This document shows, in pieces, positions 31,217 through 54,089 of a stretch of 64,000 nt of DNA. Numbering within the stretch: position 1 is the stretch's first letter; every line of letters begins with the position of its first letter. Source of the DNA: Convolutriloba macropyga (Eukaryota); the NCBI RefSeq assembly GCF_964194025.1, contig NC_134471.1, positions 45,694,001-45,758,000 of the forward strand, written 5' to 3'. The position numbers and the translations under genes are program-made. The notes under the pieces were generated by a model. That model was not told the origin of the DNA. It saw only the letters and a program-made list of their open reading frames with translations, and did no database searches.

Positions 31217-33103
31217 TTTTATTTTACTTTATTAAATTTTTTCAGCATACCTGCATTACGGCCTGATAGCGCAGCGGTGAGTGAATCAGGTTATGTTTCG
31301 GGAGTTCAATGGTTCGAATTCCACCGGGAGCACGTTTTTTCTTACCTAAAAATAACGATGAAAAACGACGATTTCATACAAGTGAAAAACAGAATTCCCC
31401 AACATGGGCCCGTGTTAAGGACAATGACGAAAAAAAACGACAATCTTTTTGTAAGAAATCGTCGTTTTCGTCGTTTTGTCGTCGTTTCCATCTTTTGCAT
31501 TTGTTTCCGTCGCTTAAGTTGTCTCTTAAAAAAAGAAAGGATCGCTTCTTCGTCTTTTTTATAGTTTCTTACGTCGTTTTTTTTTCAAATGAAATCCTCT
31601 ATTTTGTAGTTTTTTACGTCGTTTTTTTTTTCAAATGAAATCGTCGTTTTTGATCGTTTTTACGTTGTTTGTTTTGTCGTTTCTTACGTCGTTTTTTTTT
31701 TCAAAAGAAATTGTCGTTTTTTGATCGTATTCCCGTATAGTTTCATTGCTCTTGAACTAGTTTTCCTCTATTAAATTTCAAATGAAATCATCGTCTTCTG
31801 ATCGTTTTTACGTCGTTTTTTTTGGAAGTTTCTTACGTCGTTTTTTTTTCAAATGAGATCGTCGTTTTTTATTGTCTACGAAAAACGATTAAAAAACGAC
31901 GATTTCTTAGAAGTGAAAAACGAATTTCCTCAATATGGAACCGTGCTGAGGACAACGACGAAGAAACGACAATCATTTTGAAAGAACTCGTCGTTTTTGT
32001 CGTTTTGTTGTCGGTTTCGTCGTTTTGTCGTCGTTTTCTTCTTTTTCATTAGTTTCCGTCGTTCAAGTTGTCTCTTAGGTGTAAGAAGTGATCGTTTTTT
32101 GTCGTTTCTTATGTTGTTTTTTCTCAAAAGAAATCGTCGTTTTTTGATCGTTTCTCCGTAGTTTCATTACTCTTGAACTAGTTTTCCTCTATTAAATCGT
32201 TTTAGCACATCTGTATTTGGGCCTGATAGCGCAGTGGTCAGGAAATCAGTAAGTTATGGGGAGTTCAATGGTTGGAATTCCAGCTGGCTCACATTTTCGT
32301 AGTTTTTTTTTACCAAGCAAACGAAGAAAAAACGATCATTTCCTACATAAAAATAACGACGAATTAACGAACAAAACGACATCTACCATGTAAAGTCTTT
32401 GATCGTTTTTGTCTATTCCTACGTTGTTTTCTCTCAAATAAAAAAGTGGTTTTGATCGTGTTTCCGTAGTTTCATTGCTTTTGAACTAGTTTTGCTCTAT
32501 TAAATAGTTTCAGCATCGCTGCCTTACGGCCTGATAGCGCAGTGGTGAGTGCATCAGGTAACGTATCGGATGTGCATTGGTTCGAATTCCACCGGGGAAC
32601 ACGTTTTTTTCTTACATAAAAATAACGATGAAAAACGATCATGTCCTACATTAAAATAACGACGAAATAACAAAGAAAACGACAACAACCAGTTAAGGGC
32701 TTTGGTAGTTTATTTCTAAGGAAAACGATTAAAAAACGACGATTTCATACAAGTGAAAAACAGAATTCCTCAACATGGGCCCGTGTTGAGGACAACGACG
32801 AAAAATGACAATCTTTTTGTAAGAATTCGTCGTTTTCGTCGTTTTGTTGTCGTTTTCTTCGTTTTGTTGTCGTTTTCTTCGTTTTCATTAGTTTCCGTCG
32901 TTTAAGTCGTTTTTTAGGTTAATAAATGATTGTTTCTTCGTCGTTTTTATTTCAAATGAAATCGTCGTTTTTTCATCGTTTTTTTTCGTCGTTTTTTGTC
33001 GTTTCTTACGTCAATTTTTTGTAAAAGAAATTGTCGTTTTTTGATCGTTTTTTCGTAGTTTCATTGCTCGTGAACTAGTTTTTCCCTATTAAATCGTTTT
33101 AGC

Positions 33104-33108
33104 ATATA

Positions 33109-33152
<44 letters not shown>

Positions 33153-33158
33153 TATATA
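33104..33158. repeat. (TA)n microsatellite
   Basis: Visible dinucleotide run immediately upstream of a satellite head. Confidence 0.97.
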
Positions 33159-36100
33159 TTATGGCCTGATAAAGCAGTGGTGAGTGCATCAGGTAATGTA
33201 TCGGGAGTTCAATGGTTCGAACCCCCGCGGGGATCACGTTTTTTCGTACCTAAAGATAACGATGAAAAAACGATCACTTCCTACAGAAAAATGTAAGGTC
33301 TTTGATCGTTTCTGTCTAAGGAAAGCGAATAAAAACGACGATTTCATACAAGTGAAAAACAGAATTCCTCAACATGGGCCCGTGTTGAGGACAATGACGA
33401 AAAAACGACAATCATTTTGAAAGAACTCGTCGTTTTCGTCGTTTTGTTGTCGGTTTCGTAGTTTTGTCGTCGTTTTCTTCGTTTTGATCACTTTCCGTCC
33501 ATTAAGTCATCTTTTATGTGTAAGAATTGATCGTTTTTTTGTCGTTTCTTATGTTGTTTTTTCTCAAAAGAAATCGTTGTTTTTTGATCGTTTCTCCGTA
33601 GTTTCATTACTCTTGAACTAATTTTCCTCTATTAAATCGTTTTAGCACATCTGTATTTGGGCCTGATAGCGCAGTGGTCAGGAAATCAGTAATTTATGGG
33701 GAGTTCAATGGTTGGAATTCCAGCTGGCTCACATTTTCGTAGTTTTTTTTACCAAGCAAACGAAGAAAAAACGATCATTTCCTACATAAAAATAACGAAG
33801 AATTAACGAACAAAACGACATCTACCATGTAAAGTCTTTGATCGTTTTTGTCTAAGGAAAACAAATAAAACACAACCATTTCATACAAGTGAAAAACAGA
33901 ATTCATCAAGATGGGCCCGTTTTGAGGACAATGACGTAAAAACGACAATAATTTTGAAAGAACTCGTCGTTTTGTTGTCGGTTTCGTCGTTTTGCCGTCG
34001 TTTTCTTCGTTTTCATTAGTTTCCGTCGTTCAATTTGTCTCTTAGGTGTAAGAAATGATTGTTTTTTCGTCGTTTTTTTTGTATTTTCCTACGTTGTTTT
34101 TTCTCAAATAAAAAAGTGGTCTTTGATCGTGTTTCCGTAGTTTCATTGCTCTTGAGCTAATTTTACTCTATCAATTCCTTTCAGCATAGCTGCATTACGG
34201 CCTGATAGCGCAGTGGTGAGTGCATCAGGTAACGTTTCGGGAGTTAAATGGTTTTAACCCCCGCGGGGTTCTCGTTTTTTCGTACTTAAAAAAACGATGA
34301 AAAAACGATCACTTCCTACAGAAAAATGTAAGGTCTTTGATTGTTTTTGTCTAAGGAAAACAAATAAAAAACGACGATTTCATAAAAGTGAAAAACAGAA
34401 CTCCTCATCATTGGCCCGTGTTGAGGACAATGACGTAAAAACGACAATAATTTTGAAAGAACTTGTCGTTTTGTAGTCGGTTTCGTCGTTTTGCCGCCGT
34501 TTTCTTCGTTTTCATTAGTTTCCGTCGTTTAACTCGTTTTTTAAGTTAATAAATGATTGTTTCTTCGTCGATTTTATTTCAAATGAAAACGTCGTTTTTT
34601 CATCGTTTTTTTTCGTCGTTTTTTGTCGTTTCCTACGTCAATTTTTTTAAAAAGAAACCGTCGTTTTGTTGATCGTTTTTTCGTAGTTTCATTGCTCTTG
34701 AACTATTTTTTTCCCTATTAAATCGTTTTAGCATATATGTATTATGGCCTGATAGCGCAGTGGTGAGTGCATCAGGTAAGGTATCGAGAGTTCAATGGTT
34801 CGAATTCCAACCGGGAGCACGTTTTTTTCATACATAAAAATAACGTCGAAATAACAAAGAAAACGACAACAACCACTTAAGGGCTTTGGTAGTTTTTGCC
34901 TAAGGAAAACGATTAAAAAACGACGATTTCTTAAAAGTGAAAAACGAAATTCTTCAATAAGGACCCGTGTTGAGGACAACGACGAAAAATGACAATCTTT
35001 TTGTGAGCATTCGTCCTTTTCGTCGTTTTGTTGTCCTTTTCTTCGTTTTCATTGGTTTCCGTCGTTTAAGTCGTTTTCTAAGTAAATGAATGATCGTTTC
35101 TTCGTCGTTTTTTTTTCAAAAGAAATCGTTGTTTTTTGTTCGTATTTCCGTTGTTTCATTGCTCTGAACTAGTTTTTCTCTATTAAATCGTTTTAGCATA
35201 TCTGTAATTTGGCCTGATAGCGCAGTGGTGAGTGCATCAGGTAACGTATCGGAAATTCAATGGTTCGAATTCCAACGTGGAACACGTTTCTTTCTTACAT
35301 AAAATTAACGATGAAAAACGATCATTTACTACATAAAAATAACGACGAAATAACAAAGAAAATGACAATAACCAGTTAAGGGCTTTGGTAGTTTTTGCCT
35401 AAGAAAAACGATTAAAAAACGACGATTTCCTAAAATTGAAAAACGAATTTCCTCAATACGGACCCGTGCTGAGGACAATGACAAACATTGACAATCTTTT
35501 TGTAAGAATTCGTCGTTTTTTTGTCGTTTTCGTCGTTTTGTTGTCGTTTTCTTCGTTTTCATTAGTTTCCGTCGTTTAAGTCGTTTTTTAAGTTAATAAA
35601 TGATTGTTTCTTCGTCGATTTCATTTCAAATGAAAGCGTCGTTTTTTCATCGTTTTTTTCGTCGTTTTTTGTCGTTTCTTACGCCAATTTTTTTAAAAAG
35701 AAATTGTAGTTTTTTTATTGTTTTTTCGTAGTTTCATTGCTCTTGAACTAGTTTTTTCCCTATTAAATCGTTTTAGCATATTTGTATTATGGCCTGATAG
35801 CGCAGCGGTGAGTGCATCAGGTAAGGTATCGAGAGTTCAATGGTTCGAATTCCAACGGGGAGCACGTTTTTTTTCTTACATAAAAATAACGACGAAATAA
35901 CAAAGAAAACGACAACAACCACTTAAGGGCTTTGGTAGTTTTTGCCTAAGGAAAACGATTAAAAAACGACGATTTCTTAAAAGTGAAAAACGAAATTCTT
36001 CAATACGGACCCGTGTTGAGGACAACGACGAAAAATGACAACCTTATTGTGAGCATTCGTCGTTTTCGTCGTTTTGTTGTCGTTTTCTTCGTTTTCATTG

Positions 36101-39100
36101 GTTTCCGTCATTTAAGTCGTTTTTTTAAGTAAATAAATGATCGTTTCTTCGTTGTTTTTTTTTCAAATGGAATCGTCGTTTTTTGATCCTTTTTTTCGTT
36201 TTTTGTTGTTTCCTACGTCTTACTTTTTCAAAATAAATCGTCGTTTTTTGTTCGTTTTTCCGTTGTTTCATTGCTCTGAACTAGTTTTTCTCTATTAAAT
36301 CGTTTTAGCATATCTGTAATTAAATCGTTTTAGCATATCGTTTTAGCAAGATAGCGTAGTGGTGAGTGCATCAGGTAACGTATCGGGAGTTCAATAGTTC
36401 GAATCCCTGCGCGAATCCCGTTTTTTTGTCGTTTTTTTCTTACATAAAAAAAGCGTTGAAAAAACAATCAATTCCTACATAAAAACCACGACGAAATAAC
36501 GAACAAAACAACAGCTACCACGTGAAGTCTTTGGTTGTTTTTGTCTCAAGAAAACGATCAAAAAACGAAGATTTCTTACAAGTGAAAAACAAAATTCCTC
36601 AACATGAGCCCATGTTGAGTACAACGACGAAAAGAAACGACAGTCTATTTGTAAGAAATTGTCGTTTTCGTCGTTTTGTCGTCGTTTTCGTCGTTTTGTC
36701 GTCGTTTTCTTCGTTTTCATTAGTTTCTATCGTTTAAGTCGTTTGTTAAGTTAATGAATGATTGTTCCTTCGTCTTTGTTTTTCAAATGAAATCATCGTT
36801 TTTGATCGTTTTTTTCGTCGTTTTTTGTCATTTCCTACGTCGTTTTCTTATCAAAAGTTCGAATTCCTGCGCGAATCCCGTTTTTTTGTCGTTTTTTCTT
36901 ACATAAAAATAGCGATGAAAAAACGATCATTTCCTACATAAAAAGAACGACGAAATAACGAACAAAACAACAACTACCACGTGAGGTCTTTGATGGTTTT
37001 TGTCTCAGGCAAACGATCAAAAAACGACGATTTCTTACAAGTAAAGAACAAAATTCCTCAACAAATCGTCGTTTTTTGGTCGCTTTTCCGTAGTTTCATT
37101 GCTCTTGAATTAGTTTATCTTTATTGAATCGCTTTAGCTTATCTATATTATGGCCTGATAGCGCAGTGGTGAGTAAATCGGGTAATGTATCGGGAGTTCA
37201 ATGGTTGGCATCCCAGCGGGGATCTCAATTTTTCGTCGTTTTTTTCTTACATAAAAATAACGATGAAGAAAAATAACGATCTTTTGCTACATAAAAATAA
37301 CGAAGAAATAAAGAACAACATGAAAACTTCCACGTAAGGTGTTTGATCGTTTTTGTCTAAAAAACAGGATAAAAAAACGACGATTTCTTACAAGTGAGCA
37401 ACAAGATTCCTCAACATGGGCCCATGTTGAGGACAACGACAAAAAAAAGAAAGGATCGCTTCTTCGTCTTTTTTATAGTTTCTTACGTCGTTTTTTTTTT
37501 CATATGAAATCCTCTATTTTGTAGTTTTTACGTCGTTTTTTTTTCAAATGAAATCGTCGTTTTTTGATCGTTTTTACGTTGTTTGTTTTGTCGTTTCTTA
37601 CGTCATTTTTTTCAAAAAAATTGTCGTTTTTTGATCGTATTCCCGTATAGTTTCATTGCTCTTGAACTAGTTTTCCTCTATTAAATTTCAAATGAAATCA
37701 TCGTCTTCTGATCGTTTTTACGTCGTTTGGTAGTTTCCTACGTCGTTTTTTTTTCAAATGAGATCGTCGTTTTTTATTGTTTTTTTGTCTTTTTTTTTCA
37801 TTCTTACGCCGTTTTTTTTTTCAAAACAAATCGTCGTTTATTGATCGTATTCCCGTAGCTTCATTGCTCTTGAACTCGTTTTCCTCTATTAAATTTCAAA
37901 TGAAAACGTCGTTTTTTATTCTTTTTGTGTCGTTTTGTCTTTCTTACACCGTTTTTTTTTTTCAAAACAAATCGTCGTTTTTTGATCGTTTTTCCGTAGT
38001 TTCATTGCTCTTGAACTAGTTTTTCTTTATTGAATCGTTTGAGCTTATCTGTATTATGGCCTGATAGCGCAGTGGTGAGTGAATCAGGTAATGTATCGGG
38101 AGTTCAATGGTTGGCATCCCAGCGGGGATCCCCGTTTTTTGTCGTTTTTTTCTTACATAAAAATAACGATGAAAAAACGATCTTTTCCTACATAAAAATA
38201 ACGACGAAATAAAGAACAACATGAAAACTTCCACGTAAGGTGTTTGATCGTTTTGTCTAAAAAACACGATTAAAAAACGACGATTTCTTACAAGTGAACA
38301 ACAAAATTCCTCATCATGGACCCGTGTTGAGGACAACGTCGAAAAAAACGACAATTTTTTTGTAACAAATCGTCGTTTTCGTCGTTTTGCCGTCGTTTTC
38401 TTCATTTGCATTAGTTTCCGTCGCTTAAGTCGTCTCTTAAAAAAAGAAAGGATCGCTTCTTCTTTTTTTTATAGTTTCTTACGTCGTTTTTTTTTTCAAA
38501 TGAAATCCTCTTTTTTGTAGTTTCTTTCGTCGTTTTTTTTTCAAATGAAATCGTCGTTTTTTGATCGTATTCCCGTAGTTTCATTGCTCTTGAATGGTAG
38601 CGCAGTGCTGAGTGCATCACGTAATGTATCGGGAGTTCAATGGCTCGAATCCCAGCGTGGATACCGCTTTTTGTCGTTTTATGCTTACACGAAAATAACT
38701 ATGAAAATCTATCATTGCCTACATAGAAATAACGGGGAAATAGCGAACAAAACCTTAACTACCACGTAAGGGCTCTGATCGTTATTTTCCAAGGAAAACG
38801 AACAAAAAAAGACAATGTCCTACAACTGAAAAACAAAATTCCTCAACACCACCCCAGTTTGAGTACAACGACGAAAAAACGACAATCTTTTTGTAAGAAC
38901 TCGTCGTTTTCGTCATTTTGTCGCCAGTTTCGTCGTTTTCATCGTTTTCATTAGTTTCCGTCGTTTAAGTCGTCTTTTAAGTGAAAGCAATGATCATATC
39001 TTTGTGGTTTTTCTGTAGTTTTTCAAGTCGTTTTTTTTTCAGATGAAATCGCTGTTTTTTCATCGTTTTTCTGTAGTTTCATCGGTCTTGAACTAGTTTT

Positions 39101-42100
39101 TCTCTAATAAAACGTTCTATCAAATCTGTATTAGGGACTGGTAGCGCAGTGTTGAGTGCATCAGGTAATGTATCGGGAGTTCAATGGCTCGATTACCAGC
39201 GGGGATACAGCTTTTTGTCGTTATATACTTACACGAAAATAACGATGAAAAACGATCATTGCCTCTATAGAAATAACGACGAAATATCGAACGGAACCAC
39301 AACTACCACATAAAGGCTCTGATAGTTTTTCTCTATGGAAAACGAACAAAAAACGACAATTTCTAACAACAACTGAAAAACAAAATTCCTCAACACCACC
39401 CCATGTTGAGTAAAACGACAAAAAAAAGACATTTTTTTTTTAAAAACTCGTCGTTTTCTTCATTTTGTCGTCGGTTGCGTCATTTTGTCGTCGTTTTCTT
39501 CGTTTTCATTAGTCTCCGTGGTTTAAGTCGTCTTTAAATGAAAGAAAAGATCAAAACTTAGTCGTTTTTCTGTAGTTTCTCACGTCGTTTTTTTTTCAAA
39601 TGAAATCGCTCTTTTTCCATCGTTTGTCCGTAGTTTCATTGGTCTTGAACTAGTTTTTCTCTATTAAATCGTTCTACCAAATCTGTATTAAGGACTGGTA
39701 GCGCAGCGGTCAGTGCATCAGGTAATATATCGGGAGTTCAATGGCTCGAATCCCAGAGGGGATACCGCTTTTTTGTCGTTTCATATTTACACGAAAAAAC
39801 CGATGAAAAACGATCATTGCCTACCTAGAAATAACGACGAAAAAGCAAACAAATCCACAACTACCACGTAAGGGCTCTGATTGTTTTTGTCTAAGGAAAA
39901 CGAACAAAAAATGACAATTTGTTACAAGTGAAAAACAAAATTTCTCAACACCCCCCCCCCCATGTTGAGTACAACGACCGAAAACAACAATCTTTTTGTA
40001 AGAACTCGTCGTTTTCTTCATTTTGTCGTCGGTTTTGTCGTTTTGTCGTCGTATTCTTCGCTTTCATTAGTTTCCGTCGTTTAAGTCGTCTTTTAAGTGA
40101 AAGCAATGATCATATCTTTGTGGTTTTTCTGTAGTTTTTCAAGTCGTTTTTTTTTCAGATGAAATCGCTGTTTTTTCATCGTTTTTCCGTAGTTTCATTG
40201 GTCTTGAACTAATTTTTCGCTATTAAATTTTTCTACCAAATCTGTATTAAGGACTGGTAGCGCAGTGTTGAGTGCATCAGGTAATGTATCGGGAGTTCAA
40301 TGGCTCGATTACCAGCGGGGATACAGCTTTTTGTCGTTATATACTTACACGAAAATAACGATGAAAAACGATCATTGCCTCTATAGAAATAACGACGAAA
40401 TATCGAACGGAACCACAACTACCACATAAAGGCTCTGATAGTTTTTCTCTATGGAAAACGAACAAAAAACGACAATTTCTAACAACAACTGAAAAACAAA
40501 ATTCCTCAACACCACCCCATGTTGAGTAAAACGACAAAAAAAAGACATTTTTTTTTTTAAAACTCGTCGTTTTCTTCATTTTGTCGTCGGTTGCGTCATT
40601 TTGTCGTCGTTTTCTTCGTTTTCATTAGTCTCCGTGGTTTAAGTCGTCTTTAAATGAAAGAAAAGATCAAAACTTAGTCGTTTTTCTGTAGTTTCTCACG
40701 TCGTTTTTTTTTCAAATGAAATCGCTCTTTTTCCATCGTTTGTCCGTAGTTTCATTGGTCTTGAACTAGTTTTTCTCTATTAAATCGTTCTACCAAATCT
40801 GTATTAAGGACTGGTAGCGCAGCGGTCAGTTTATCAGGTAATATATCGGGAGTTCAATGGCTCGAATCCCAGAGGGGATACCGCTTTTTTGTCGTTTTAT
40901 ATTTACACGAAAAAACCGATGAAAAACGATCATTGCCTACCTAGAAATAACGACGAAAAAGCAAACAAATCCACAACTACCACGTAAGGGCTCTGATTGT
41001 TTTTGTCTAAGGAAAACGAACAAAAAATGACAATTTGTTACAAGTGAAAAACAAAATTTCTCAACACCCCCCCCCCATGTTGAGTACAACGACCGAAAAC
41101 GACAATCTTTTTGTAAGAACTCGTCGTTTTCTTCATTTTGTCGTCGGTTTTGTCGTTTTGTCGTCGTATTCTTCGCTTTCATTAGTTTCCGTGGTTTAAG
41201 TCGTCTTTTAAGTGAAAGAGATGATCAAATCTTTGTCGTTTTTCTGTAGTTTCTCACGTCGTATTTTTTTTTCAAATGAAGTCGCTGCTTTTCCATCGTT
41301 TTTTGCGTAGTTTCATTGGTCATGAACTAGTTTTTCTCTATTAAATCGTTCTACCAAATCTGTATTGAGGACTGGTAACGCAGTGGTGAGTGTACCAAGT
41401 AATGTATTGGGAATTCAATGGCTCGAATCCCAGCGGAGATACGGCTTTTTTGTCGTTTTATACTTACACGAAAATAACAATGAAAACCTATCATTGCCTC
41501 TATAGAAATAACGACGAAATATCGAACGGAACCACAACTACCACATAAAGGCTCTGATAGTTTTTCTCTATGGAAAACGAACAAAAAACGACAATTTCTA
41601 ACAACAACTGAAAAACAAAATTCCTCAACACCACCCCATGTTGAGTAAAACGACAAAAAAAAGACAATTTTTTTTAAAACTCGTCGTTTTCTTCATTTTG
41701 TCGTCGGTTGCGTCGTTTTGTCGTCGTTTTCTTCGTTTTCATTAGTCTCCGTGGTTTAAGTCGTCTTTAAATGAAAGAAAAGATCAAAGCTTAGTCGTTT
41801 TTCTGTAGTTTCTCACGTCGTTTTTTTTTTCAAATGAAATCGCTCTTTTTCCATCGTTTGTCCGTAGTTTCATTGGTCTTGAACTAGTTTTTCTCTATTA
41901 AATCGTTCTACCAAATCTGTATTAAGGACTGGTAGCGCAGCGGTCAGTGCATCAGGTAATGTATCGGGAGTTCAATGGCTCGAATCCCAGAGGGGATACC
42001 GCTTTTTTGTCGTTTTATATTTACACGAAAAAACCGATGAAAAACGATCATTGCCTACCTAGAAATAACGACGAAAAAGCAAACAAATCCACAACTACCA

Positions 42101-45100
42101 CGTAAGGGCTCTGATTGTTTTTGTCTAAGGAAAACGAACAAAAAATGACAATTTGTTACAAGTGAAAAACAAAATTTCTCAACACCCCCCATGTTGAGTA
42201 CAACGACCGAAAACGACAATCTTTTTGTAAGAACTCGTCGTTTTCTTCATTTTGTCGTCGGTTTTGTCGTTTTGTCGTCGTATTCTTCGTTTTTATTAGT
42301 TTCCGTGGTTTAAGTTGTCTTTTAAGTGAAAGAGATGATCAAATCTTTGTCGTTTTTCTGTAGTTTCTCACGTCGTATTTTTTTTCAAATGAAGTCGCTG
42401 CTTTTCCATCGCTTTTTGCGTAGTTTCATTGGTCATGAACTAGTTTTTCTCTATTATATCGTTCTACCAAATCTGTATTGAGGACTGGTAACGCAGTGGT
42501 GAGTGTACCAAGTAATGTATCGGGAATTCAATGGCTCGAATCCCAGCGGAGATACGGCTTTTTTGTCGTTTTATACTTACACGAAAATAACAATGAAAAC
42601 CTATCATTGCCTACATACAAATAACGATGAAAAAGCGAACAAAACCACAACTACCACGTAAGGGCTCTGATTGTTTTTCTCTAAGGAAAACGAACAAAAA
42701 ACGACAATTTCTTACAACTGAAAAACAAAATTCCTCAACACCACCCCATGTTGAGTGCAACGACGAAAAAACGACAATCGTTTTGTAAGAACTCGTCGTT
42801 TTCGTCATTTTGCCTTCGGTTTTGTCGTATTTTTTGTCGTTTTCTTCGTTTTCATTAGTTTCCGTCGTATAAGTCGTATTTTAAGTGAAAAAAATGATCA
42901 TATCTTTGTCGCTTTTCTGTAGTTTTTCACGTCGTTTTTTTTTCAAATGAAATCGCTGTTTTTTCATCGTTTTTCCGTAGTTTCATTGGTCTTGAACTAA
43001 TTTTTCGCTATTAAATTGTTCTACCAAATCTGTATTGAGGACTGGTAACGCAGTGGTGAGTGTACCAAGTAATGTATCGGGAGTTCAATGGCTCGAATCC
43101 CAGCGGAGATACGGCTTTTTTGTCGTTTTATACTTACACGAAAATAACAATGAAAATCTATCATTGCCTACATACAAATAACGATGAAAAAGCGAACAAA
43201 ACCACAACTACCACGTAAGGGCTCTGATTGTTTTTCTCTAAGGAAAACGAACAAAAAATGACAATTTGTTACAAGTGAAAAACAAAATTTCTCAGCACCC
43301 CCCCATGTTGAGTACAACGACCGAAAACGACAATCTTTTTGTAAGAACTCGTCGTTTTCTTCATTTTGTCGTCGGTTTTGTCGTTTTGTCGTCGTATTCT
43401 TCGTTTTCATTAGTTTCCGTGGTTTAAGTCGTCTTTTAAGTGAAAGAGATGATCAAATCTTTGTCGTTTTTCTCTAGTTTCTCACGTCGTATTTTTTTTC
43501 AAATGAAGTCGCTGCTTTTCCATCGTTTTTTGCGTAGTTTCATTGGTCATGAACTAGTTTTTCTCTATTAAATCGTTCTACCAAATCTGTATTGAGGACT
43601 GGTAACGCAGTGGTGAGTGTACCAAGTAATGTATCGGGAATTCAATGGCTCGAATCCCAGCGGAGATACGGCTTTTTTGTCGTTTTATACTTACACGAAA
43701 ATAACAATGAAAACCTATCATTGCCTACATACAAATAACGATGAAAAAGCGAACAAAACCACAACTACCACGTAAGGGCTCTGATTGTTTTTCTCTAAGG
43801 AAAACGAACAAAAAACGACAATTTCTTACAACTGAAAAACAAAATTCCTCAACACCACCCCATGTTGAGTGCAACGACGAAAAAACGACAATCGTTTTGT
43901 AAGAACTCGTCGTTTTCGTCATTTTGCCGTCGGTTTTGTCGTATTTTTTGTCGTTTTCTTCGTTTTCATTAGTTTCCGTCGTATAAGTCGTCTTTTAAGT
44001 GAAAAAAATGATCATATCTTTGTCGCTTTTCTGTAGTTTTTCACGTCGTTTTTTTTTTTCAAATGAAATCGCTGTTTTTTCATCGTTTTTCCGTAGTTTC
44101 ATTGGTCTTGAACTAATTTTTCGCTATTATATTGTTCTACCAAATCTGTATTGAGGACTGGTAACGCAGTGGTGAGTGTACCAAGTAATGTATCGGGAAT
44201 TCAATGGCTCGAATCCCAGCGGAGATACGGCTTTTTTGTCGTTTTATACTTACACGAAAATAACAATGAAAACCTATCATTGCCTACATACAAATAACGA
44301 TGAAAAAGCGAACAAACCCACAACTACCACGTAAGGGCTCTGATTGTTTTTCTCTAAGGAAAACGAACAAAAAACGACAATTTCTTACAACTGAAAAACA
44401 AAATTCCTCAACACCACCCCATGTTGAGTGCAACGACGAAAAAACGACAATCGTTTTGTAAGAACTCGTCGTTTTCGTCATTTTGCCGTCGGTTTTGTCG
44501 TTTTTTTGTCGTTTTCTTCGTTTTCATTAGTTTCCGTCGTATAAGTCGTCTTTTAAGTGAAAGAAATGATCATATCTTCGTCGCTTTTCTGTAGTTTTTC
44601 ACGTCGTTTTTTTTTCAAATGAAATCGCTGTTTTTTCATCGTTTTTCCGTAGTTTCATTGGTCTTGAACTAATTTTTCGCTATTAAATTGTTCTACCAAA
44701 TCTGTATTAAGGACTGGTAGCGCAGTGGTGAGTGCATCAGGTAATGTATCGAGAGTTCAATGGCTCGAATACCAGCGGGGAAACCGCTTTTTGTCGTTAT
44801 ATAATTACACAAAAATAACGACGAAACACGATCATTGCCTACATAGAAATAACGACGAAATATCGAACAAAACCACAACTACCACGTAAGGGCTCTGATT
44901 GTTTTTGTCTAAGGAAAACGAACAAAAAATGACAATTTGTTACAAGTGAAAAACAAAATTTCTCAACACCCCCCCCCCCCATGTTGAGTACAACGACCGA
45001 AAACGACAATCTTTTTGTAAGAACTCGTCGTTTTCTTCATTTTGTCGTCGGTTTTGTCGTTTTGTCGTCGTATTCTTCGCTTTCATTAGTTTCCGTGGTT

Positions 45101-45374
45101 TAAGTCGTCTTTTATGTGTAAGAAAAGATCTTTTCTTTGTCGTTTTCTTGCAGTTCCTTACGTCGTTATTCTTTCATATGAAATCGTTGTTTTTGATCGT
45201 ATTTCCGTAGTTTCATTGCTCTTGAATAAGTTTTTTGTCTATTAAATCGGTTTAGCATATCTGTATTAAGAGCTGAGAGCGCAGTGGTGAGTGCATCAGG
45301 TAATGTATCGGGAGTTGAATGGTTCGAATCCCGACGGGGATCCCGTTTTATACAAGAAAATAACGATGAAAAAA

Positions 45375-45509
45375 CGGGTTTTTCCCATTATAGCCCCCCC
45401 CACCTTAGTGGTCAGATAATCTATAGCCCCCCCCCAATCATGGTAATTATAGCATAATGGGGAAGGGGCTTAATTTTTATGGGGGGGGGGCTATAATGGG
45501 GAAGAACCG
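45375..45509. mobile_element. 135-bp palindromic MITE-like insert in the last satellite unit
   Basis: cccattatagcccccccc ... ggggggggctataatggg inverted repeat. Confidence 0.7.
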
Positions 45510-46241
45510 AAATAACAAACAAAACGACAACTACCACGTAAGGGCTGTTTTCATTCACAGGGTAAATCTTTGCTGAAATTTCGTAAGAAATTGGCTGAGA
45601 CTTTCTGAAATTTCGTGAGTCCGCTAAAAATAAGCTGCTATTGCAAAAGAATTGCATTCAAAATGCGTGGAAATATTCAGCGCATTCCTAAAATTGTGCA
45701 TCAGCGCATTCACAAAATTGCAGCGCATTTGTAGCATAATTTTAGCACATTCCACGCATTTCGTAGTCAAATAGCGCACTGAAACTGGGCTGAAATCTTG
45801 GTCTGGTCTGAATGATTCTTTTTAAATTCAATTATTTACTGTAAATTACTTTGTTTATTGCTGACATGGTTCTAATTCAAATCAACAGTCTACTAATTGA
45901 GTTTACCGTCCTCCTACTGCTTTTTAATTTCATCAATTTCATTCAGTCTTTTTCGTTTACTCAGGCAATTTGTTCAACTCCCCTCTCATTGGGTGAGCGA
46001 GAAGAATCAATTAAGAAACTAAGTCCCGTCCCCTCCCATTGGTTGACATAGTAGTTCAGCCTCAAAATCGAAGCAATCATTCTGCGATATTATCAATCGA
46101 TCAATTCAGCTTCGATATATCTCCCATCTCCCGACGTTTTTGGCGAGCTATTATTAATTTTGGGCACTACACCCCCGTAGTTCTGAACTCTAGTAAACAA
46201 CGAAGACAGAAATGGTATAAATTTCCACGGCCTAAATACTT

Positions 46242-46864
46242 CCCGCGTCGAGGATTGGTCGAAAAATAATGTAAGAATTGCGGTGAATAGCGGTGAAAGA
46301 AAAATAATGTTCACCGCAAAGCGCCCGCAGCTTTTTGCGATGAATGCGCTGAAAGCGGTGAATTTTTTGTAAGATCTGCGATTTTTAGCGGTGAGTTTTT
46401 TTTCACCGCATTCATCGGATTTCTTACTAAAAAACTGCCGTACACGGATTCGAACCTCTTATCTACTGCATGTCATCACCTTCATATTTCTCTGCGCCAT
46501 CTGTCACGTAATTGCGTGTTACTTCTTGTAAATTTAAATCAGAATCATTAAACGTTATGAAAAGAAAAATGCGTTGAAATTTTGTAAGATTTGCGGTTTT
46601 TAGCGATGAATTTTTTATTTTCACCGCTTAGGCGTTGAAAAAAATAATTCACCGCTACCAATCGCAAATCTTACAAACATTCACCGCAAAAAATATACAG
46701 TGATTTTTAGCGGAAGATTTGCAATTCTTAGCGTTGAATTATTTTTTTTTCACCGCATTCATTGCATTCAACGCTAAAAATCGCAATTCTTATATCTTTT
46801 CACCGCCTTCACCGCAAATCTTACATTTTTTTAGCGATTATTAGCGTTGATACCTCGACCCGGG
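46242..46864 (-). mobile_element. Non-autonomous CMC/EnSpm-like DNA transposon
   Basis: Ends cccgcgtcgagg / cctcgacccggg, TT on both flanks, GCGGTGAA/TTCACCGC subterminal repeats. Confidence 0.85.
46429..46505 (-). promoter_or_regulatory. tRNA-like Pol III cassette inside the MITE
   Basis: Minus strand: TGGCGCAGAG (A box), GGTTCGAATCC (B box, 46446-46456), T6 at 46429-46434. Confidence 0.7.
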
Positions 46865-47345: not shown

Positions 47346-47596
47346 CTATAAACAAGAAACAAATGAAAAGTAAGTGAACAAGCGCCTGTGACAATTGTGT
47401 ATCAGTCTAGTCGATGGTCGGTATCATCGTTTTTTTTCCAGTCAAAAACGGCAAAACTTCATACAATTATATCGTTGACATCATAGTTTCTGTTCGGTAT
47501 TTCGGTATTTAACATAAGAAAAATTAGGTATCCAAACGCAAGAGACATTCGGTATCGTAATTTTTACACGTTAGAGGCTCGGTACCGTTTTGAATA

Positions 47597-48950
47597 CCCT
47601 AGTGATCGACGAATTCAAAATCTTGCAAGAATCTTGCAAGCAACCTTGGAAGGGATTGCATACTACTTGCAAGCAGCTTGCAAGATTCTTGCAAGATTTG
47701 AATCATCTTCCAAGAATCTTGCAAGATTTTGAATTCAACTTGCAAGTATCTTGCAAGATTATGAATTCATATTGCAAGTTTGTTGCAAGATTTTGAATTC
47801 TTCGATATTTTTTTACCTGGTTCGCTGGCTGCACTCGGCGGTTGATGGAGTTGAAATAGTTAAGCTACTGTCGGAAAATCTAATTAAGTCTAGTTAAAAA
47901 ACTGACTTTTTTGATTTTTTTTCCAGTATGATTTTTGTGGTTCATCCCTCCTCCTTTTTCATTCCGGGCTGGGGACCGGCAGTGGCGGAGTTACTGAAAT
48001 AAGCTATAGGAGTACTGATTCCGTACGGCAAAAAAACCGCACTTACACAGTTCTCCGAAACAAACAAAACGACTAAACCAGACAAAAGAAATCAATATGA
48101 ACACAATATAGCAAATAAGTTATCAGAAAAAGATCTCAAGCCAATATAAAAACCGACTTTTTCGCAATTTTCCGGTATAATTAATGTTTTTCGCTACTCT
48201 ATTCTTATTCCGGGCTTAGGACTGGCAGTGGCGGAGTTACTTAAATCGACTAAAGGAGTACTGAAGGCATCATATACGTTTATTAAAAACTCAATAGGAA
48301 GATATTTAGACCGCACCATAAATAATCGGAATTTTTTTACGACAACAAAAACATGCTAATTTACCGATAGAATCAGTAACAAAATAATTTCAAAAAGTAT
48401 TTGTTTCTCTAAAAATAATTATTTTAAAAAAAATGAGAAAAAGATTGAAAGTGTTTTCGTCTTAAATTAGGTAAAATGAACTTTAAAAAGACGGATTTGA
48501 TTGCCTCGAGTTGTTTCTAGTTATTTGTGGGAAATTTAATTTTGAATTCAGAATCTTGCAAGAAACTTGCAAGATTCTTGCAAGATTTCACATTCAAAAG
48601 GCGTGTTCAAAAAAGTCAATTAAGTTTAGTTTTGCTGATCAAGAAAACTGATATCAGTCATTTCGTTTGGTTTTTTAGTTAGTTTCAGCCACCAATTATA
48701 CACAAATAAATTTTCAAGAATTCAAAAACTTGCAAGATTCTTGCAAGATTCTTGCAAGATTCTTGCAAGTTTTTGAATCCGAGTTAATCTTTTTTTCATT
48801 GAATTCGGTTTTGTAATTTGTTTAATAAACAAAAGTTTGCTTCAAAAATGGTTCCTAAAACATTTGTACCCCGATTTCTTGCAAGAATCTTGAAAGTTTT
48901 GAAACATCCTGCAAGATTCTTGCAAGATTTGAATCCGCTCATCACTAGGG
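47597..48950. mobile_element. Non-autonomous CCC-ended DNA transposon with CTTGCAAG repeats
   Basis: TIR ccctagtgat / atcactaggg extending ~40 bp, TA on both flanks, many palindromic cttgcaag units. It sits within a ttcggtat-repeat element. Confidence 0.9.
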
Positions 48951-50149
48951 TAAGATGAAAAAAGATGAAAAAGATTCGGTTTCATTGTTTTTCAAACACG
49001 AAAACAATTTGGTATCGTCATTTTCGGTATTGTTTCTTCCGGTAATTGTTTACGTAAAATTTCAATTGAATTAGATGTTATTGCTATTCTAGCTATTTGA
49101 GAGGTTTTATTTGCTATGGAGGGAAAAGTTTGATGGTCAACATTAAGATACTGTGTTTATAATTGAAAGGCTGTAACTACTAAGGTTATAATTCGTCAGC
49201 TTTTAGAACATTAATTTTAAAATGGTTATATGTCTTCTAGTGGCTGTTGATTCACCTGTTGTAAAGAAAATGTCTAAGTACACATGATAGCGTTTTAGGT
49301 TTGAGGGGTTTTTTTCATTGTTTGCTGCGGATTATCCAGGATTGTGTGTGCTGTATGTAAGTCTGTATTTTAATTAGAGAAAATAAGTGAGTAAAATATT
49401 GTAGCCAAGCTTTGTGGATGTTGCGTTTTTGCGCGAGTGCTTGTAATGGTTAAATTTTGTTACTTTAATGGTCGCACCAGTTAAGGCTGAACCGATATGC
49501 GCTCTTTTTAATACCTTAGTATTAGTTTAGTTAGAGCTACTTATTTCTGCGTGCCAATTATAGTTACCTAGGTCAATAGGACTAACGGAATCAGTAATAC
49601 ACTGAAGAAGAAGTTCAATTATTATGACAAATGATATAATGTTTGCCAGTGTCAAATGTACACTCAAAGTGTGGAAAACTGTTTTAGACTGAAGTTAATA
49701 TAATTGCAAGCGCTTTATCTTCGTGAATAGAATCTTCTCAATCTGTGATTGGTGGAGGAATCACGTTCTGGATTTTTATCTTCTGCAATTTTTATAAATG
49801 TTGTACTACTTACTGCTTGAAACGTTAATGTTTCGTGTCTGAATTCTTGGTTTTTATTCGATTCAGATATTTTATCGAGCCTTGTTTATAACACAATTAC
49901 ATTTTTTTGCTGTCTTCTGTTTTTCTTTGTGATTGTTGTTGTCAATTCTGTCGATTAGTTTTGCGATTCGAAATAACAAAGGTGCACAATGGTTGTAGAT
50001 GTCTATTTGAGTTTCATTTTAATTTTTCAAATATGCTCGTTTTCAAAATTGGTAATATGTATTCTAATGTGCCGTAAATTTCTGCTAGTCACTTCTAAAA
50101 TTGCAAACTGTGTGTACCCATGTTGAAGTCCCAGACAGAAGTAAATATG

Positions 50150-50800
50150 TCCAAAACGAATATGAACGCACAAGAGGGGCGTCGTGCGTTCAAATTTACA
50201 TAGCCTGGAAACATCGAAATGGAAACGCGCGAAATTCTGGACATGATTGAACGAAAGTCTGAACATGATTCCACGAAGGTCTAAACATGGCCGAACTCCT
50301 GGACATAAACACCCCCTGGGCACACGAAAACATTCCATTTTTTAAAAACGTTGTAAGCATTGTGCTCGCACAAGAACGTTATACGCAGAAATAGTTGCAT
50401 TCCACTTTTTGCCTTGTTTTGGACAATTTTTCTTTTATGTTTATGTTACCAAGTCAGTATACATCCAAATCATAACCCTCAAGTCTCTATAGATGAAATG
50501 AATAAATTATATTTTTTATGAGCAACCAATATGGAGAAGTATGGGATAAGTCTGAATATGAACGCACAAAATTCTGGACATGAACGCACGAATATCCGTT
50601 AAGTTCACGAAATTTTGGTGCACGCACGATCGTCTGGACATGAACGCACAAAAGTCTGAACATGAGCGCACTGAAGTCTGATCAACGCACGGAAGTCTGA
50701 TGAGCGCAAGAAAATCTATTGAACCTTGTGAGCGCACTAAAGTCTGGATATAGACACTTTCCGTCTGTGAAGGTCTGGACACACTTGCTTCTGTCTGGTA
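50150..50800. repeat. Decayed MITE-type short repeats (gaacgcac / gtctg)
   Basis: Repeated catgaacgcac..gtctg(g/a)a units related to those at 54519-55498. Ends not resolved. Confidence 0.5.
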
Positions 50801-50932
50801 TCTCAACCATCATTCATTGGTTTTTGTTGTAGCCAAATGTGTTTCTTGTTTCTCTAGTTTTTAATCCATTTGGTTTTATATCAGTCTGTTTTTGATGGAG
50901 TCAATTGATCAGACATTCCACTGCTTCCTCCA

Positions 50933-51562
50933 CCCGGGTTGAAGTTTCTTTGATTTCATACAAGGATCATATATGATTTCATACTGTCCATACTTGATTT
51001 CTTAGTACGATCCTTGTATGAAACCAAAGAAATCATATATGATACTTGTATGATTACCAAGAAATCATATATGACCCTGGAACGAATACCAAGAACCATA
51101 CATCTATTTTTTTAAAAATCTTTAACCATTTATGTTTTTTTGTTTTTATTCGGTAGGTTATCACATATATGATACCCCGGCATCACATTGTGATCCGCCA
51201 AAAGACCCTAACGTACAATATCAATTGCAAGTTGGGCACAAAATAAAAGAGTAAGTCCAAACAAATAACAGAATTTTTGACATACTCTGAAGCCAGTTTA
51301 TACATATAAATGCTCATTTATAAAAAAAATTATTCAAGAAAAACAATTCATATCACGTCAAATTCGTTTTCTGAATACGTTTAAACCACAAAGTTATTCT
51401 TTGAGCGCGCACAAAGAATCAAATGTGGATTGCAAATGCGATATGATAAATAATAAGTCCTCTGACTACATTATACGAGAATTTGTGGCACCAGTCAATG
51501 TATTATGTGTCATATATGACCTAGTACGAAATCAAAGAAAGTTGTATGATCGTTGACCCGGG
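50933..51562. mobile_element. Non-autonomous CCC-ended element
   Basis: cccgggttgaag / cgttgacccggg ends, CA on both flanks, tcatatatga subterminal palindromes. Confidence 0.75.
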
Positions 51563-51719
51563 CAGGTAAGACGTGACCTGATGAGCCCAATGGTCCTATG
51601 GCAAGTCTCATTTTTGTCAAGGTTACTTACGTAGATAACCGAATTGTAATTACCGGATGTAATCTCTTAGTCGTGGCTCTATGTTTCCCGGGCCGAGGTG
51701 TCAACGCTAAAAAACGCAA

Positions 51720-52960
51720 AATTATGTAAGATTGGCGTTGAATGCGTTGAATTTATGTAAGATCTACGCTTGAGCGTAGATCTTACATAAATTCAACGCA
51801 TTCAACGCCAATCCTACATAATTTTGCGTTGAATTTGGGCGTAGATATACATATTTAGCGTTGAATTTTAGCGTAGATCTTACATATTTAGCGTTGAATT
51901 TAGCGTAGAACTTACATAAATTCAACGCATTCAACGCCAATCTTACATATTTTGCGTTGAACTTTGGCGTAGATCTTACATAATTAGCGTTGAATTTTAG
52001 CGTAGATCTTACATATTTAGCGTTGAATTTAGCGTAGAACTTACATAAATTCAACGCATTCAACGCCAATCTTACATATTTTGCGTTGAATTTAGCGTAG
52101 ATCTTACATAAATTCAACGCATTCAACGCCAATCTTACATAATTTTCCGTTGAATTTTGGCGTAGATCTTACATATTTAGCGTTGAATTTTAGCGTTGAT
52201 CTTACGTATTTAGCGTTGAACTTAGCGTAGATCTTACATGAATTCAACGCATTCAACGCCAATCTTACATAATTTTGCGTTGAATTTTGGCGTAGATCTT
52301 ACATATTTAGCGTTGAATTTTAGCGTAGATCTTACATATTTAGCGTTGTATTTAGCGTAGATCTTACAGAAATTCAACGCATTCAACGCCAATATTACAT
52401 TTTTTGCGTTGAAATTTGGCGTAGATCTTACATATTTAGCGTTGTATTGTAGCGTAGATCTTACATATTTTGCGTTGAATTTAGCGTAGATCTTACATAA
52501 ATTCAACGCTTTCAACGCCAACCTTACATATTTTGCGTTCAAATTCGGCGTAGATCTTACATATTTAGCGTTGAACTTTAGCGTAGATCTTAAATATTTA
52601 GCATAGAATTTAGCGTAGATCTTACATAAATTCAATGCATTCAACGCCAATCTTACATAATTTTGCGTTGAATTTTGGCGTAGATCTTACATATTTAGCG
52701 TTGAATTTTAGCGTAGATCTTACATATTTAGCGTTGAATTTAGCGTAGATCTTACAAAAATTCAACGCATTCAACGCCAATCTTACATATTTTGCGTTGA
52801 AATTTGGCGTAGATCTTACATATTTAGCGTTGAATTGTAGCGTAGATCTTATATATTTAGCGTTGAATTTAGCGTAGATCTTACATAAATTCAACGCTTT
52901 CAACACCAATCTTACATATTTTGCGTAGATTTTTGGCTTAGATCTTACAAATTTAAGGTT
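51720..52960. repeat. 30-31-bp minisatellite with ~92-122-bp higher-order units
   Basis: tagcgtagatcttacatatttagcgttgaatt repeated, interspersed with ttcaacgcattcaacgcc variants. Confidence 0.95.
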
Positions 52961-52974
52961 GAATTTTTTGAATT

Positions 52975-53720
52975 CCATTTCAGACCTTTTTATGATTTCA
53001 AAAATTTTTCAAGTTTTTTTCAAAAAGTCAATTTTTTTCTGTTTCGACCCCTATGCTTCACAGGTGAGAAAAGCGAAGTCAGCGAAAAACCACTTTTTAG
53101 TGCTCTTTTATAGTGCAAAATCCATTTGAGACCATTTTACAATTTCAAAACTTTTCAAGTTTTTTTTTCCGAAAAATCAATTTCACTGTTTCGACCCCTA
53201 TGCTGCAAAAGTGAGAAATGTGAATTGAGAGAAAAATCATTTTTTAGTGCTCTTTTATAGTGCAAAATCCAATTGACACCATTTTATGGTTTCAAATTTT
53301 TCAAGTTTTCTTTCAAAAAGTTAATTTTTAACTGTTTCAACCCTATACTGCACAGGTGAGAAAAATCACTTAGTGCTCTTTTGTAATGCAAAATCCGTTT
53401 CAGACCATTTTACGATTTCAAAACTTTTTCAAGTTTTTTTTTCGAAAATTTAATTTTTTCACTATTTCGAACCCTATACTCCAAAGGTGAGTAACCAGAA
53501 GTCAGAAAAATTCTTTTTTAGTGCTCTTTTATAGTGCAAAATCCAATTCAGACCATTTGAAGATTTCAAATTTTTCAAGTTTTTTTCGAAAAATTAATTT
53601 TTTTACTGTTTCGACCCCTATACTGCACAATTGAGAAAAATGAAGTCAGCAAAAAATAACCATTTGCTCTCTTACGGTGCAAAAACCATTTTAGGAATTT
53701 TAGGAATTCAAATTTTTTTC
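52975..53720. repeat. ~147-bp tandem repeat, about 5 copies
   Basis: cca(t/a)tt.agaccatttt starts near 52975, 53122, 53269, 53394, 53543 and 53686. Confidence 0.9.
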
Positions 53721-53998
53721 AAAACTTAAAAAAAATTTTAAATTTTTCTCGGTACTTCTCACATGATAAATGCGTTGAATACGTTGAAATTATGCAAGAT
53801 CTCAGCTAAATTCAACAAAAAATATGTAAAATCTAGGCTAAATTCAACGAAATATATGCAAGTTCTACGCTAAATTCAATGCAAAATATGTAAGGTCTAC
53901 GCCAAAATCAACGCAAAATATGTAAGATCTACGCAAAATTCAACGCAATATATGTAAGATCTACGCTTTATAAGGATTTCGGCTCTTAAGGAAACCAA

Positions 53999-54089
53999 GG
54001 TACATTGGCTTAATGGTAGAAGAGGCGACAAGTAAACAGGAGGTCAGTGGCTCGAGTCCCATACCCAGAGTTCTGGGCGTTGATTTTTT
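53999..54089 (+). promoter_or_regulatory. tRNA-like Pol III cassette inside the element
   Basis: A box TGGCTTAATGG (54006), B box GGCTCGAGTCC (54049), hairpin cccagagttctggg, T6 at 54084. Confidence 0.65.

Follow-up and report, generated by a model that had tools for sequence, protein, structure and literature searches.

The retention of Pol III promoter boxes in DNA transposons is unexpected because such elements move without an RNA copy. A stretch of 64,000 nucleotides of Convolutriloba macropyga DNA (contig NC_134471.1, 45,694,001-45,758,000, forward strand), which we refer to as the window and to which the positions below are relative, raises the question of why three transposon families, here termed families 1, 2 and 3, contain tRNA-like units with an A and a B box.

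The carriers are non-autonomous DNA transposons

Families 1, 2 and 3 are real non-autonomous cut-and-paste DNA transposons of the MITE type. They are bounded by terminal inverted repeats (TIRs) of 12-13 bp with CCC...GGG ends and flanked by a target site duplication (TSD) of 2 bp, which is perfect in 11 of 12 dispersed copies of family 1 and in 8 of 8 sampled copies of family 3 and which reads tt/tt in the family 2 copy of the window, thus confirming their description as non-autonomous DNA transposons in a first-pass annotation of this DNA. The duplicated sequence is varied, with ta, aa, ca, tg, ag, ct, tt, cc and tc found in families 1 and 3. Copy numbers amount to at least ~270, ~670 and ~1000 for families 1, 2 and 3, respectively, with genome pattern counts of 268 left ends at up to two mismatches for family 1, of 669 candidates by left end and 1053 by cassette for family 2, and of 1490 by left end and 1042 by cassette for family 3, where 40 left ends are 100% identical across 104 bp. 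Elements of families 1 and 2 span 0.46-0.7 kb and those of family 3 1.1-2.9 kb, the latter being larger as a consequence of internal repeats. Real ORFs are absent from the three elements. Their subterminal repeat motifs are specific to each family, and arrays of such motifs are also carried by CACTA elements.

Ends of the CCC...GGG type are a property of piggyBac elements, which duplicate a TTAA target; in the families described here, such ends are present but are not flanked by TTAA. In ISL2EU elements of the PHIS superfamily, the TSD is 5'-AT-3' (PMC4482050). Both assignments are excluded since the observed TSDs are varied. CMC (Chapaev-Mirage-CACTA) elements have TSDs of 2-4 bp (PMC4482050), a range that includes the 2 bp found here, and the C-rich letters with which the ends open are CMC-like, but the end motif CCCG.G..GAGG differs from that of classic CACTA elements and no transposase was linked to the three families. 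In the 10-kb pieces read at loci searched for an autonomous partner, only Gypsy-like RT/integrase was detected, and four loci sampled via the left end of family 2 run on into different, longer interiors.

The cassettes belong to the families that carry them

A box, B box and T-run of all three cassettes were located where they had previously been annotated, in the satellite, at 46429-46505 and at 53999-54089. Family 1 forms this satellite on the plus strand (31260-45545), with about 24 head-to-tail monomers of ~558 bp each, whose ends abut as GGG|CCC without a target duplication between them and which contain one tRNA-like unit per monomer, directed to the ..AATTCCTC..GGG end. Dispersed solo copies align to monomer positions 1-552 and measure 458-628 bp, besides one copy of 1161 bp with a nested element inside. 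In an example cassette (39692-39775, plus strand), which opens with a 7-nt acceptor-like start, the A box TAGCGCAGCGG is found at 39699 and the B box GGCTCGAATCC, with one mismatch, at 39743-39753, followed by a T6 about 15 nt further at ~39769. Another family 1 cassette lies beyond the region 31260-54089 (16354-16435, plus strand), with the junction to the next copy at 17144|17145.

The family 2 copy (46242-46864, minus strand, 623 bp) is bounded by the TIRs CCCGCGTCGAGG (46242-46253) and CCTCGACCCGGG (46853-46864), contains subterminal repeats of TTCACCGC and CTTACA motifs and is matched over its full length by other genomic copies. Its cassette (46429-46505, minus strand) comprises the A box TGGCGCAGAGA at 46489-46499, with two mismatches to the consensus TGGCGCAGTGG, the B box GGTTCGAATCC at 46446-46456 and a T-run at 46429-46434. 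The family 3 copy (51687-54391, plus strand, 2705 bp) carries the TIR CCCGGGCCGAGG at both ends with flanks tt/tc. Its left arm, which contains TTCAACGC/GTAAGATC motifs, is expanded to 129-bp repeats (51877-52967), and a 147-bp minisatellite (52974-53717) constitutes an integral but variable part of the family. The cassette (53999-54089, plus strand) sits in the right arm, with the A box TGGCTTAATGG (consensus TGGCGCAATGG) at 54006-54016, the B box GGCTCGAGTCC (consensus GGTTCGAGTCC) at 54049-54059 and a T6 at 54084-54089, which falls within one of the element's own motif units.

The consensus of every family retains a canonical type-2 Pol III promoter, with the A box TRGCGCARTGG and the B box GGTTCGANNCC placed 43-44 nt apart from start to start and a run of 6-7 T located 11-24 nt past the B box. 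The T-run is uninformative since T-runs are common in these elements. In the window, each cassette has 1-2 bases that differ from the canonical boxes. All 20 pairs of A and B boxes at tRNA spacing detected on both strands of the 64-kb window reside within these elements, and their presence is far beyond chance. Both boxes are canonical in 17 of 18 young copies of family 3, in 3 of 20 copies of family 2, in 4 of 16 dispersed copies of family 1 and in none of its 25 window units; in the satellite, only 2 of ~25 units have a canonical B box, which is mutated in the most amplified variant. The cassette was found in 8/8 evaluable copies of family 3 and in 6/10 copies of family 2 sampled via the left end. 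For family 1, its core (at most one mismatch) is near only 3/11 exact left ends (C1-C3), in a sampling that is not bias-free.

Within the elements, the unit occupies a constant position among sampled family members between the left and right arms, with one unit per element that is oriented toward the right end. It is preceded by 33-70 nt of unique, non-tRNA DNA upstream of the tRNA-like +1 and followed directly by a T-run and motifs of the MITE. Without exception, the sampled copies of each cassette were situated within MITEs and not within free-standing retroelements. The cassette is integral to each family and not a nested SINE. The case that the first-pass annotation had named against itself, namely that independent SINEs happened to insert into three MITEs, would account for the resemblance of the units, which are tRNA-derived and possess both boxes, to SINE heads, but it is contradicted by the constant place of the unit and its unique upstream DNA, and by the lack of a SINE body, a LINE-like or A-rich tail and a SINE-type TSD around the unit, and we regard it as very improbable.

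The tRNA fold is lost

The cassettes have retained 14 (family 1), 8 (family 2) and 7 (family 3) of 21 cloverleaf pairs, compared to 21/21 in the genome's real tRNA-Thr(AGT) (C7:2972251-2972337). In none of the three families are the acceptor and T stems intact, and pairing in families 2 and 3 is at the random level. ARAGORN detected no tRNA in the window, nor did it call one at the cassettes of ~75 loci, and for four loci whose copies resemble the consensus Rfam gave no tRNA match at E <= 10, in agreement with the earlier statement that none of the units folds as a tRNA. Although a transport of working tRNA genes as cargo would be consistent with the preserved tRNA length and box geometry and with the D stem (4/4) and anticodon stem (4/5) kept in family 1, it is contradicted by the lost pairs and the absent tRNA calls and almost certainly does not apply.

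The families are related and the cassette is dispensable for transposition

Comparison of the ends of families 2 and 3 yields z = 12.1 for left with left and 6.3 for right with right, with cross comparisons at 1.8-3.3, and for families 1 and 3 the respective values are 4.6 and 1.7, with cross comparisons at or below 0. By these sequence comparisons, the three families are relatives that are homologous from end to end. Since left ends match left and right ends match right, the common polarity of the cassettes is most simply inherited. Their shared orientation, as initially described, is real, but with three families it would arise by luck in one out of four cases, and it is explained by common descent. 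Equally, the view that each family carries a different cassette in a convergent arrangement is not supported as it stands, one inherited module being the simpler reading in view of the end-to-end homology.

The architecture is not shared by all CCC-ended MITEs, as the window contains four further families of this type, all without strand assignment, that lack a cassette. These comprise a CCC...GGG MITE family at 47590-48948 with CCCTAGTGAT ends, a TSD ta and CTTGCAAGA motifs, a CCC-ended family at 50115-50812 with CCCATGTTGAAG ends and GTCTGAACATGA motifs, a CCC...GGG family at 54519-55498 with CCCAGGTCGAGG ends and GTCTGATCAGAGG motifs, and a family at 55514-56090, whose left end CCTGGGTCGAGGTGTCACCGC is close to families 2 and 3 and where neither a cassette nor a right end was found in the ~570 bp present. 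Since four related families lack the cassette, it is not needed for transposition.

Origin of the module and conservation of its boxes

Along the segment running from the anticodon loop to the B box, inclusive, family 3 matches tRNA-Thr(AGT) at 26/30 positions, and CAGGAGAT is shared by family 2 at the corresponding place. The source of the family 3 cassette is clearly of the tRNA-Thr(AGT) type, and the cassettes of all three families resemble diverged copies of one module, probably of this origin, which is clear for family 3 only.

The three consensuses agree at 15 of 17 constrained box positions, the other two being allowed R/R changes, compared to 14 of 55 non-box positions (Fisher p = 5e-6). 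The identity of family cassettes outside of the boxes is 0.44-0.45, as expected from the initial observation that they differ there; this non-box similarity (44%) is not above that expected of two different tRNAs. The DNA immediately upstream of the cassettes is unalignable across families. Between families, the boxes are much more conserved than the remainder of the cassette; within families, they are kept no better than the positions next to them. The between-family identity of the boxes suggests that the promoter may be under selection.

Alternatively, the cassette could be a passive passenger, originating from a tRNA gene, a tRNA pseudogene or the tRNA-like part at the head of a Pol III-dependent retroelement, which one or several ancestral MITEs picked up during gap repair or when two ends formed a composite, where it would play no role for the MITE and the likeness of the boxes would stem from the source lineage or from later conversion. 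Box conservation could be inherited as all tRNAs share these boxes, which are freely lost by single copies and the satellite, and sister families without a cassette transpose well. Other abundant repeats of the genome carry closely similar tRNA-like 3' halves (~1000 and ~540 unclassified pattern matches), and capture or conversion from there would mimic selection, while a 6-bp repeat, CTACGC, on both sides of the unique-plus-tRNA block of family 3 would fit microhomology capture. However, the cassettes are far from a working tRNA, yet their substitutions have spared nearly all of the constrained box positions, with family 3 and tRNA-Thr sharing 94% of box but 56% of non-box positions, and the sampled cassettes are confined to MITEs. 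We consider a passenger without function less likely than not.

Relationship to known elements

We have found no published description of such elements, whose nearest known kinds are SINEs and the TRIMp3 elements Cassandra and Helenus. In Pack-MITEs, or by transduplication, host gene fragments are taken up between the ends of non-autonomous DNA transposons, which resembles the uptake of host DNA with its flanks proposed here, but in the present case the captured piece is a Pol III gene whose promoter boxes, in contrast to its other parts, persisted as the families diverged. Units with A and B boxes that are able to bind TFIIIC and to act on chromatin are found in Xenopus satellite 1, in SINE B2 and MIR insulators and in TFIIIC 'ETC' sites. 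Pol III satellites and tDNA or B-box boundaries share the tandem or dispersed arrangement of such units; in contrast to these, most satellite units of the window have a mutated B box.

Papers on MITEs distinguish them from SINEs as having neither a Pol III promoter nor homology to tRNAs (PMC3879986, PMC3845634). In the three families, TIRs, a TSD of fixed length and a small, non-coding, high-copy nature are all present, but the consensuses contain canonical A and B boxes. With tRNA-derived SINEs they share the high copy number and a tRNA-derived part in which both boxes are kept and the cloverleaf has decayed, whereas the unit is internal instead of 5'-terminal, is devoid of a body, a tail and a retroposition-type TSD, and movement is by TIRs. 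TRIMp3 elements comprise Cassandra (5S), Helenus (tRNA-like) and Ajax (5S), which are non-autonomous LTR retrotransposons described without mention of DNA transposons or MITEs (PMC10886601). These are similarly short and non-autonomous, contain a piece of a small-RNA gene with Pol III motifs kept and the parent fold lost, and can form tandem arrays, but they carry LTRs, PBS and PPT, and their promoter makes the template for reverse transcription (PMC10886601). In families 1-3, the ends are inverted and not direct, with a TSD of 2 bp instead of 4-5 bp and a single cassette in each element. Since the unit stops at a T-run after ~80-95 nt, a role as template is not available, and with the T-run directly after the unit, a transcript could not carry a tail.

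A proposed role of the promoter

Our main reading, to which we assign a probability of about 50%, is that a tRNA-derived module was taken up and its boxes subsequently selected for the binding of Pol III factors in related MITE families. The module would probably have been acquired as DNA that included its 5' flank, the simplest scenario being a single uptake by a common ancestor, and its boxes would be held by selection in lineages that are still multiplying, while old single insertions would lose them. We infer from the sequence that the cassette may use Pol III. Given that the conservation does not extend to RNA structure and that DNA transposons do without an RNA template, binding of TFIIIC, TFIIIB or Pol III to the element DNA would be the likeliest selected property, which might lead to open or boundary chromatin, where copies would stay accessible to the transposase or escape silencing. 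A transcript of 80-95 nt would be a by-product or secondary player.

Instead of acting on chromatin, Pol III-bound DNA could attract the transposase as a landing beacon, as for Ty1, Ty3 and Dictyostelium TRE, and in this way build clusters and arrays. Within 10 kb adjoining the 24-unit array there are six CCC...GGG MITEs, at one locus (L015) a family-2-like element resides inside a family 1 copy, 1-3 nt before the A box, and a real tRNA-Ala is found 1.1 kb from one family 3 locus. However, these cases are single anecdotes without a baseline in a region that is TE-rich anyway, and the flanks of sampled insertions are unrelated and tRNA-free, making such targeting improbable.

Returning to box selection for factor binding, we tentatively propose that this MITE radiation may keep a tRNA-derived Pol III promoter since recruitment of TFIIIC or Pol III helps the element, either by counteracting silencing and opening chromatin or as an insertion beacon, a possibility to which we give less than even odds. 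If true, SINEs and TRIMp3 elements would have a counterpart among class II elements, whose promoter would act in another way than by providing a template for transposition.

Results

Three transposon families carry an integral tRNA-like cassette

The window comes from a eukaryotic assembly of 1.18 Gb (C4:45694001-45758000, with Cn referring to chromosome n and G000 to the assembly). Its satellite array at 31260-45545, comprises about 24 family-1 monomers of ~558 bp each, and the next 10 kb contain several short elements with CCC...GGG ends. The tRNA-like unit of the satellite has scattered relatives on many chromosomes, and all 20 that were fetched reside within solo elements matching monomer positions 1-552, whose ends consist of CCCGTGTTGAGGA and its complement and which are bordered by a perfect 2-bp target site duplication (TSD) of varied sequence in 11 of 12 cases. 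The family-2 element (46242-46864, minus strand, 623 bp, TSD tt) has full-length matches among other copies. Family 3, represented in the window at 51687-54391 on the plus strand, has at least 1000 relatives in the genome; its TSDs are perfect in 8/8 copies, and the 100% identity of 40 left ends across 104 bp identifies it as very young.

The junctions between satellite monomers (32768-44440, e.g. between 32779 and 32780) show GGG directly followed by CCC without the 2-bp duplication found in solo copies, which fits an array seeded by joined transposon ends, such as a circular excision product. Within family 3, a 147-bp minisatellite (window 52974-53717) differs in copy number among copies and is missing in the shortest one, L058. 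Another copy, at the locus L056 (G000:C7:52565130-52570230), is broken from ~339 by an element beginning with AGTAGTAAG, whose protein-primed DNA polymerase B (PF03175) and Endonuclease VII-like ORF identify it as Polinton-like. The large ORFs of this locus, considered as a candidate transposase, were rejected as part of this nested element, and no transposase was linked to the families. The varied 2-bp TSD rules out both ISL2EU, which would require AT, and piggyBac, which would require TTAA, and is within the range of CMC transposons (PMC4482050).

The three cassettes described in the first-pass annotation are present in the satellite monomer, at 46429-46505 (minus strand) in family 2 and at 53999-54089 in family 3, each containing motifs that resemble an A box and a B box at a distance of 43-44 nt, together with a T-run. 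In a scan of both strands of the entire 64 kb for B boxes (up to one mismatch) accompanied at tRNA spacing by A boxes (up to two mismatches), all 20 pairs were located inside these elements, a confinement that is not due to chance. When copies were sampled by their left ends, and thus blind to the cassette, it was found in 8 of 10 members of family 3, each time 386 bp from the right end, with the remaining two cut by the nested Polinton-like insertion or an assembly gap. In family 2 it was present in 6/10, and in the other four the left end leads into a different and longer interior; Gypsy-like genes were found in the distal 10-kb pieces, the part of these interiors that was read. The family-1 cassette pattern also matches other abundant repeat families and its counts thus do not provide an unbiased census. 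Independent SINE insertions, an alternative raised in the first-pass annotation, are excluded by the lack of a SINE body, tail or SINE-type duplication around them and by the 33-70 nt of unique DNA upstream of the tRNA-like start. Among the contigs of four public runs, the family-3 cassette was detected in identical pieces in organisms A and B and about 90% alike in D, whereas it was absent from those of organism C, which contained motif arrays only. A search of the run records revealed none registered as RNA. A joint that 'skips 137', considered as a cassette-less allele, was rejected as an appearance of contigs that stem from arrays of the element's 32-bp unit. Common variants in this cassette affect an N position of the A box, one site between the boxes and the initial G of the B box, and are too few for a test of constraint.

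The cassettes derive from tRNA but no longer fold as such

The boxes are more canonical in the family consensus sequences, each based on 8-11 copies, than in the window copies. The A and B boxes read TAGCGCAGTGG and GGTTCGAATCC in family 1, TGGCGCAGTGG and GGTTCGAACCC in family 2, and TGGCGCAATGG and GGTTCGAGTCC in family 3, with a spacing from start to start of 44 nt in the first and 43 nt in the other two. They are followed by T6, T7 and T6 at distances of 14, 11 and 24 nt past the B box, respectively, although the T-run carries no weight as evidence, since such runs are common in these elements and the one of family 3 falls within a motif unit.

As reference, we used the genome's own tRNA-Thr(AGT) at C7:2972251-2972337, which was read by three 35-nt pattern walks. 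Whereas this tRNA forms 21/21 cloverleaf pairs, the cassettes of families 1, 2 and 3 retain 14, 8 and 7, with about 8 expected at random. ARAGORN detected no tRNA in the window and called none of the cassettes a tRNA in ~75 loci, while recognizing a real tRNA-Ala in the locus L054, and Rfam returned no tRNA match in the window at gathering thresholds or in four loci with consensus-like copies at E <= 10, which together bear out the initial view that none folds as a proper tRNA. The Rfam matches were generic hairpins only, assigned to miRNA models and originating from subterminal palindromes. In family 3, the copies L058 and L033 contain near-perfect long hairpins of ~110 nt close to both ends, whose scores against miRNA-precursor models (MIR1888 and MIR7504 among several) are sub-threshold and reflect generic MITE hairpin behaviour.

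Of the 30 positions that extend from the anticodon loop to the end of the B box, 26 match tRNA-Thr(AGT) in family 3, and family 2 has CAGGAGAT in common with this tRNA at the same position, while a putative link of family 1 to it is weak. In the window copy of family 3, the A box (54006-54016) reads TGGCTTAATGG instead of the consensus of its family, with GCTT being the state of the real tRNA-Thr; this copy shows eight changes clustered in the cassette and a left 104 bp equal to the consensus. The genome also contains tRNA-Thr-like genes and pseudogenes in large tandem clusters at G000:C13:31.07-31.20 Mb and C12:3.395-3.421 Mb, with well over 100 units carrying the anticodons AGT, CGT or TGT and point changes in many.

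The shared polarity is most simply inherited

The relationship between families was assessed from the 57 nt following the terminal inverted repeat proper at each end. Families 2 and 3 yielded z = 12.1 for left against left, 6.3 for right against right and 1.8-3.3 for left against right, and the corresponding values for families 1 and 3 were 4.6, 1.7 and at most 0. Judged from these end sequences, the families are homologous in one fixed orientation. The common polarity of the cassettes reported in the first-pass annotation is thus genuine but does not indicate convergent design: inheritance would be its simplest explanation, and with three families luck alone would produce it one time in four. 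Outside the boxes, the cassettes are no more similar to each other than expected of two different tRNAs, and their upstream DNA did not align between families. The architecture does not extend to CCC-ended MITEs in general, since the box scan detected no cassette in four further CCC...GGG families of the window (47590-48948, 50115-50812, 54519-55498 and 55514-56090). It is a mark of one branch of the group rather than of the whole.

Promoter boxes are preferentially kept

Of the 17 constrained box positions, 15 are shared by all three consensuses, the two exceptions being purine-for-purine replacements allowed by the box consensus, compared to 14/55 of the other aligned positions (Fisher p = 5e-6). 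Outside the boxes, identity between pairs of families is 0.44-0.45. Similarly, family 3 is 94% identical to the real tRNA-Thr in the boxes and 56% elsewhere. The expectation that boxes are more conserved than their flanks thus holds between families, but within family 1 no signal was found in a sample that was picked by cassette and is hence biased. Canonical A and B boxes are present in 17/18 young family-3 copies, in 3/20 copies of family 2, in 4/16 dispersed copies of family 1 and in none of its 25 units in the window. Such retention in founders followed by loss in copies, a pattern also found in SINEs and TRIMp3, is our principal reason to regard the boxes as important to the element. The substitution pattern suggests constraint on the boxes themselves, with loss of the tRNA fold.

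Alternatively, the cassette could be a passive passenger, a possibility that we consider less likely. A and B boxes are common to all tRNAs and other abundant repeats contain nearly the same 3' half as the family-1 cassette, so that capture or conversion from a lineage in need of a promoter could resemble selection in a MITE. At least two very abundant repeat families share this 3' half (CGGGAGGTCAATGGTTCGAAT; ...TCAGTGGTTCGAATCCCGGTGGGGTCAA preceding the T-run; e.g. G000:C1:48437034-48441775 and C3:42048653-42052990), with GCACCCATAAA or CCACCCGCCTG following the T-run and some copies located 1.4-1.6 kb apart.

Discussion

The feature described in this study is real and abundant. It is near certain that we are dealing with a transposon with terminal inverted repeats that contains an integral module of tRNA origin, in which the structure has decayed while the Pol III boxes were preferentially kept. 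We further propose that the boxes would bind TFIIIC/Pol III and that this binding may benefit the element, to which we give roughly even odds. The benefit would be expected at the level of DNA or chromatin, because RNA structure is not kept, no RNA template is required and the unit would terminate after 80-95 nt. For the structural and functional reading as a whole, we estimate a probability of about 0.5. A role of the cassette as landing beacon, directing insertion via Pol III, appears highly improbable, with only two hints in its favour, the local cluster of MITEs in the window and a nested insertion. In this single case, at the locus L015 (G000:C15:3891047-3894129, ~1584-2156), a family-2-like MITE resides in opposite orientation within a family-1 copy at the 5' end of its tRNA-like unit, with 1-3 nt left up to the A box, a position that recalls Pol III-start targeting.

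[quoted passage not shown] Among described elements, the nearest to the present families are tRNA-derived SINEs and the TRIMp3 group (Cassandra, Helenus, Ajax; PMC10886601), in whose description DNA transposons are not mentioned (PMC10886601). For MITEs, the absence of a Pol III promoter has served as a defining criterion (PMC3879986, PMC3845634), from which the present families depart, being numerous and in part very young DNA transposons that retain such a promoter. A full-text search of the literature, with Repbase notes and subscription journals outside its range, revealed no description of a MITE with a tRNA-derived Pol III promoter.

If the boxes are constrained, binding of TFIIIC/Pol III would directly benefit a DNA transposon, thus providing a testable link among the Pol III machinery, chromatin state and transposon control. 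The families add thousands of potential TFIIIC sites to this genome, where they will confuse SINE and MITE classifiers and counts of tRNA pseudogenes, and they could act on host genes.
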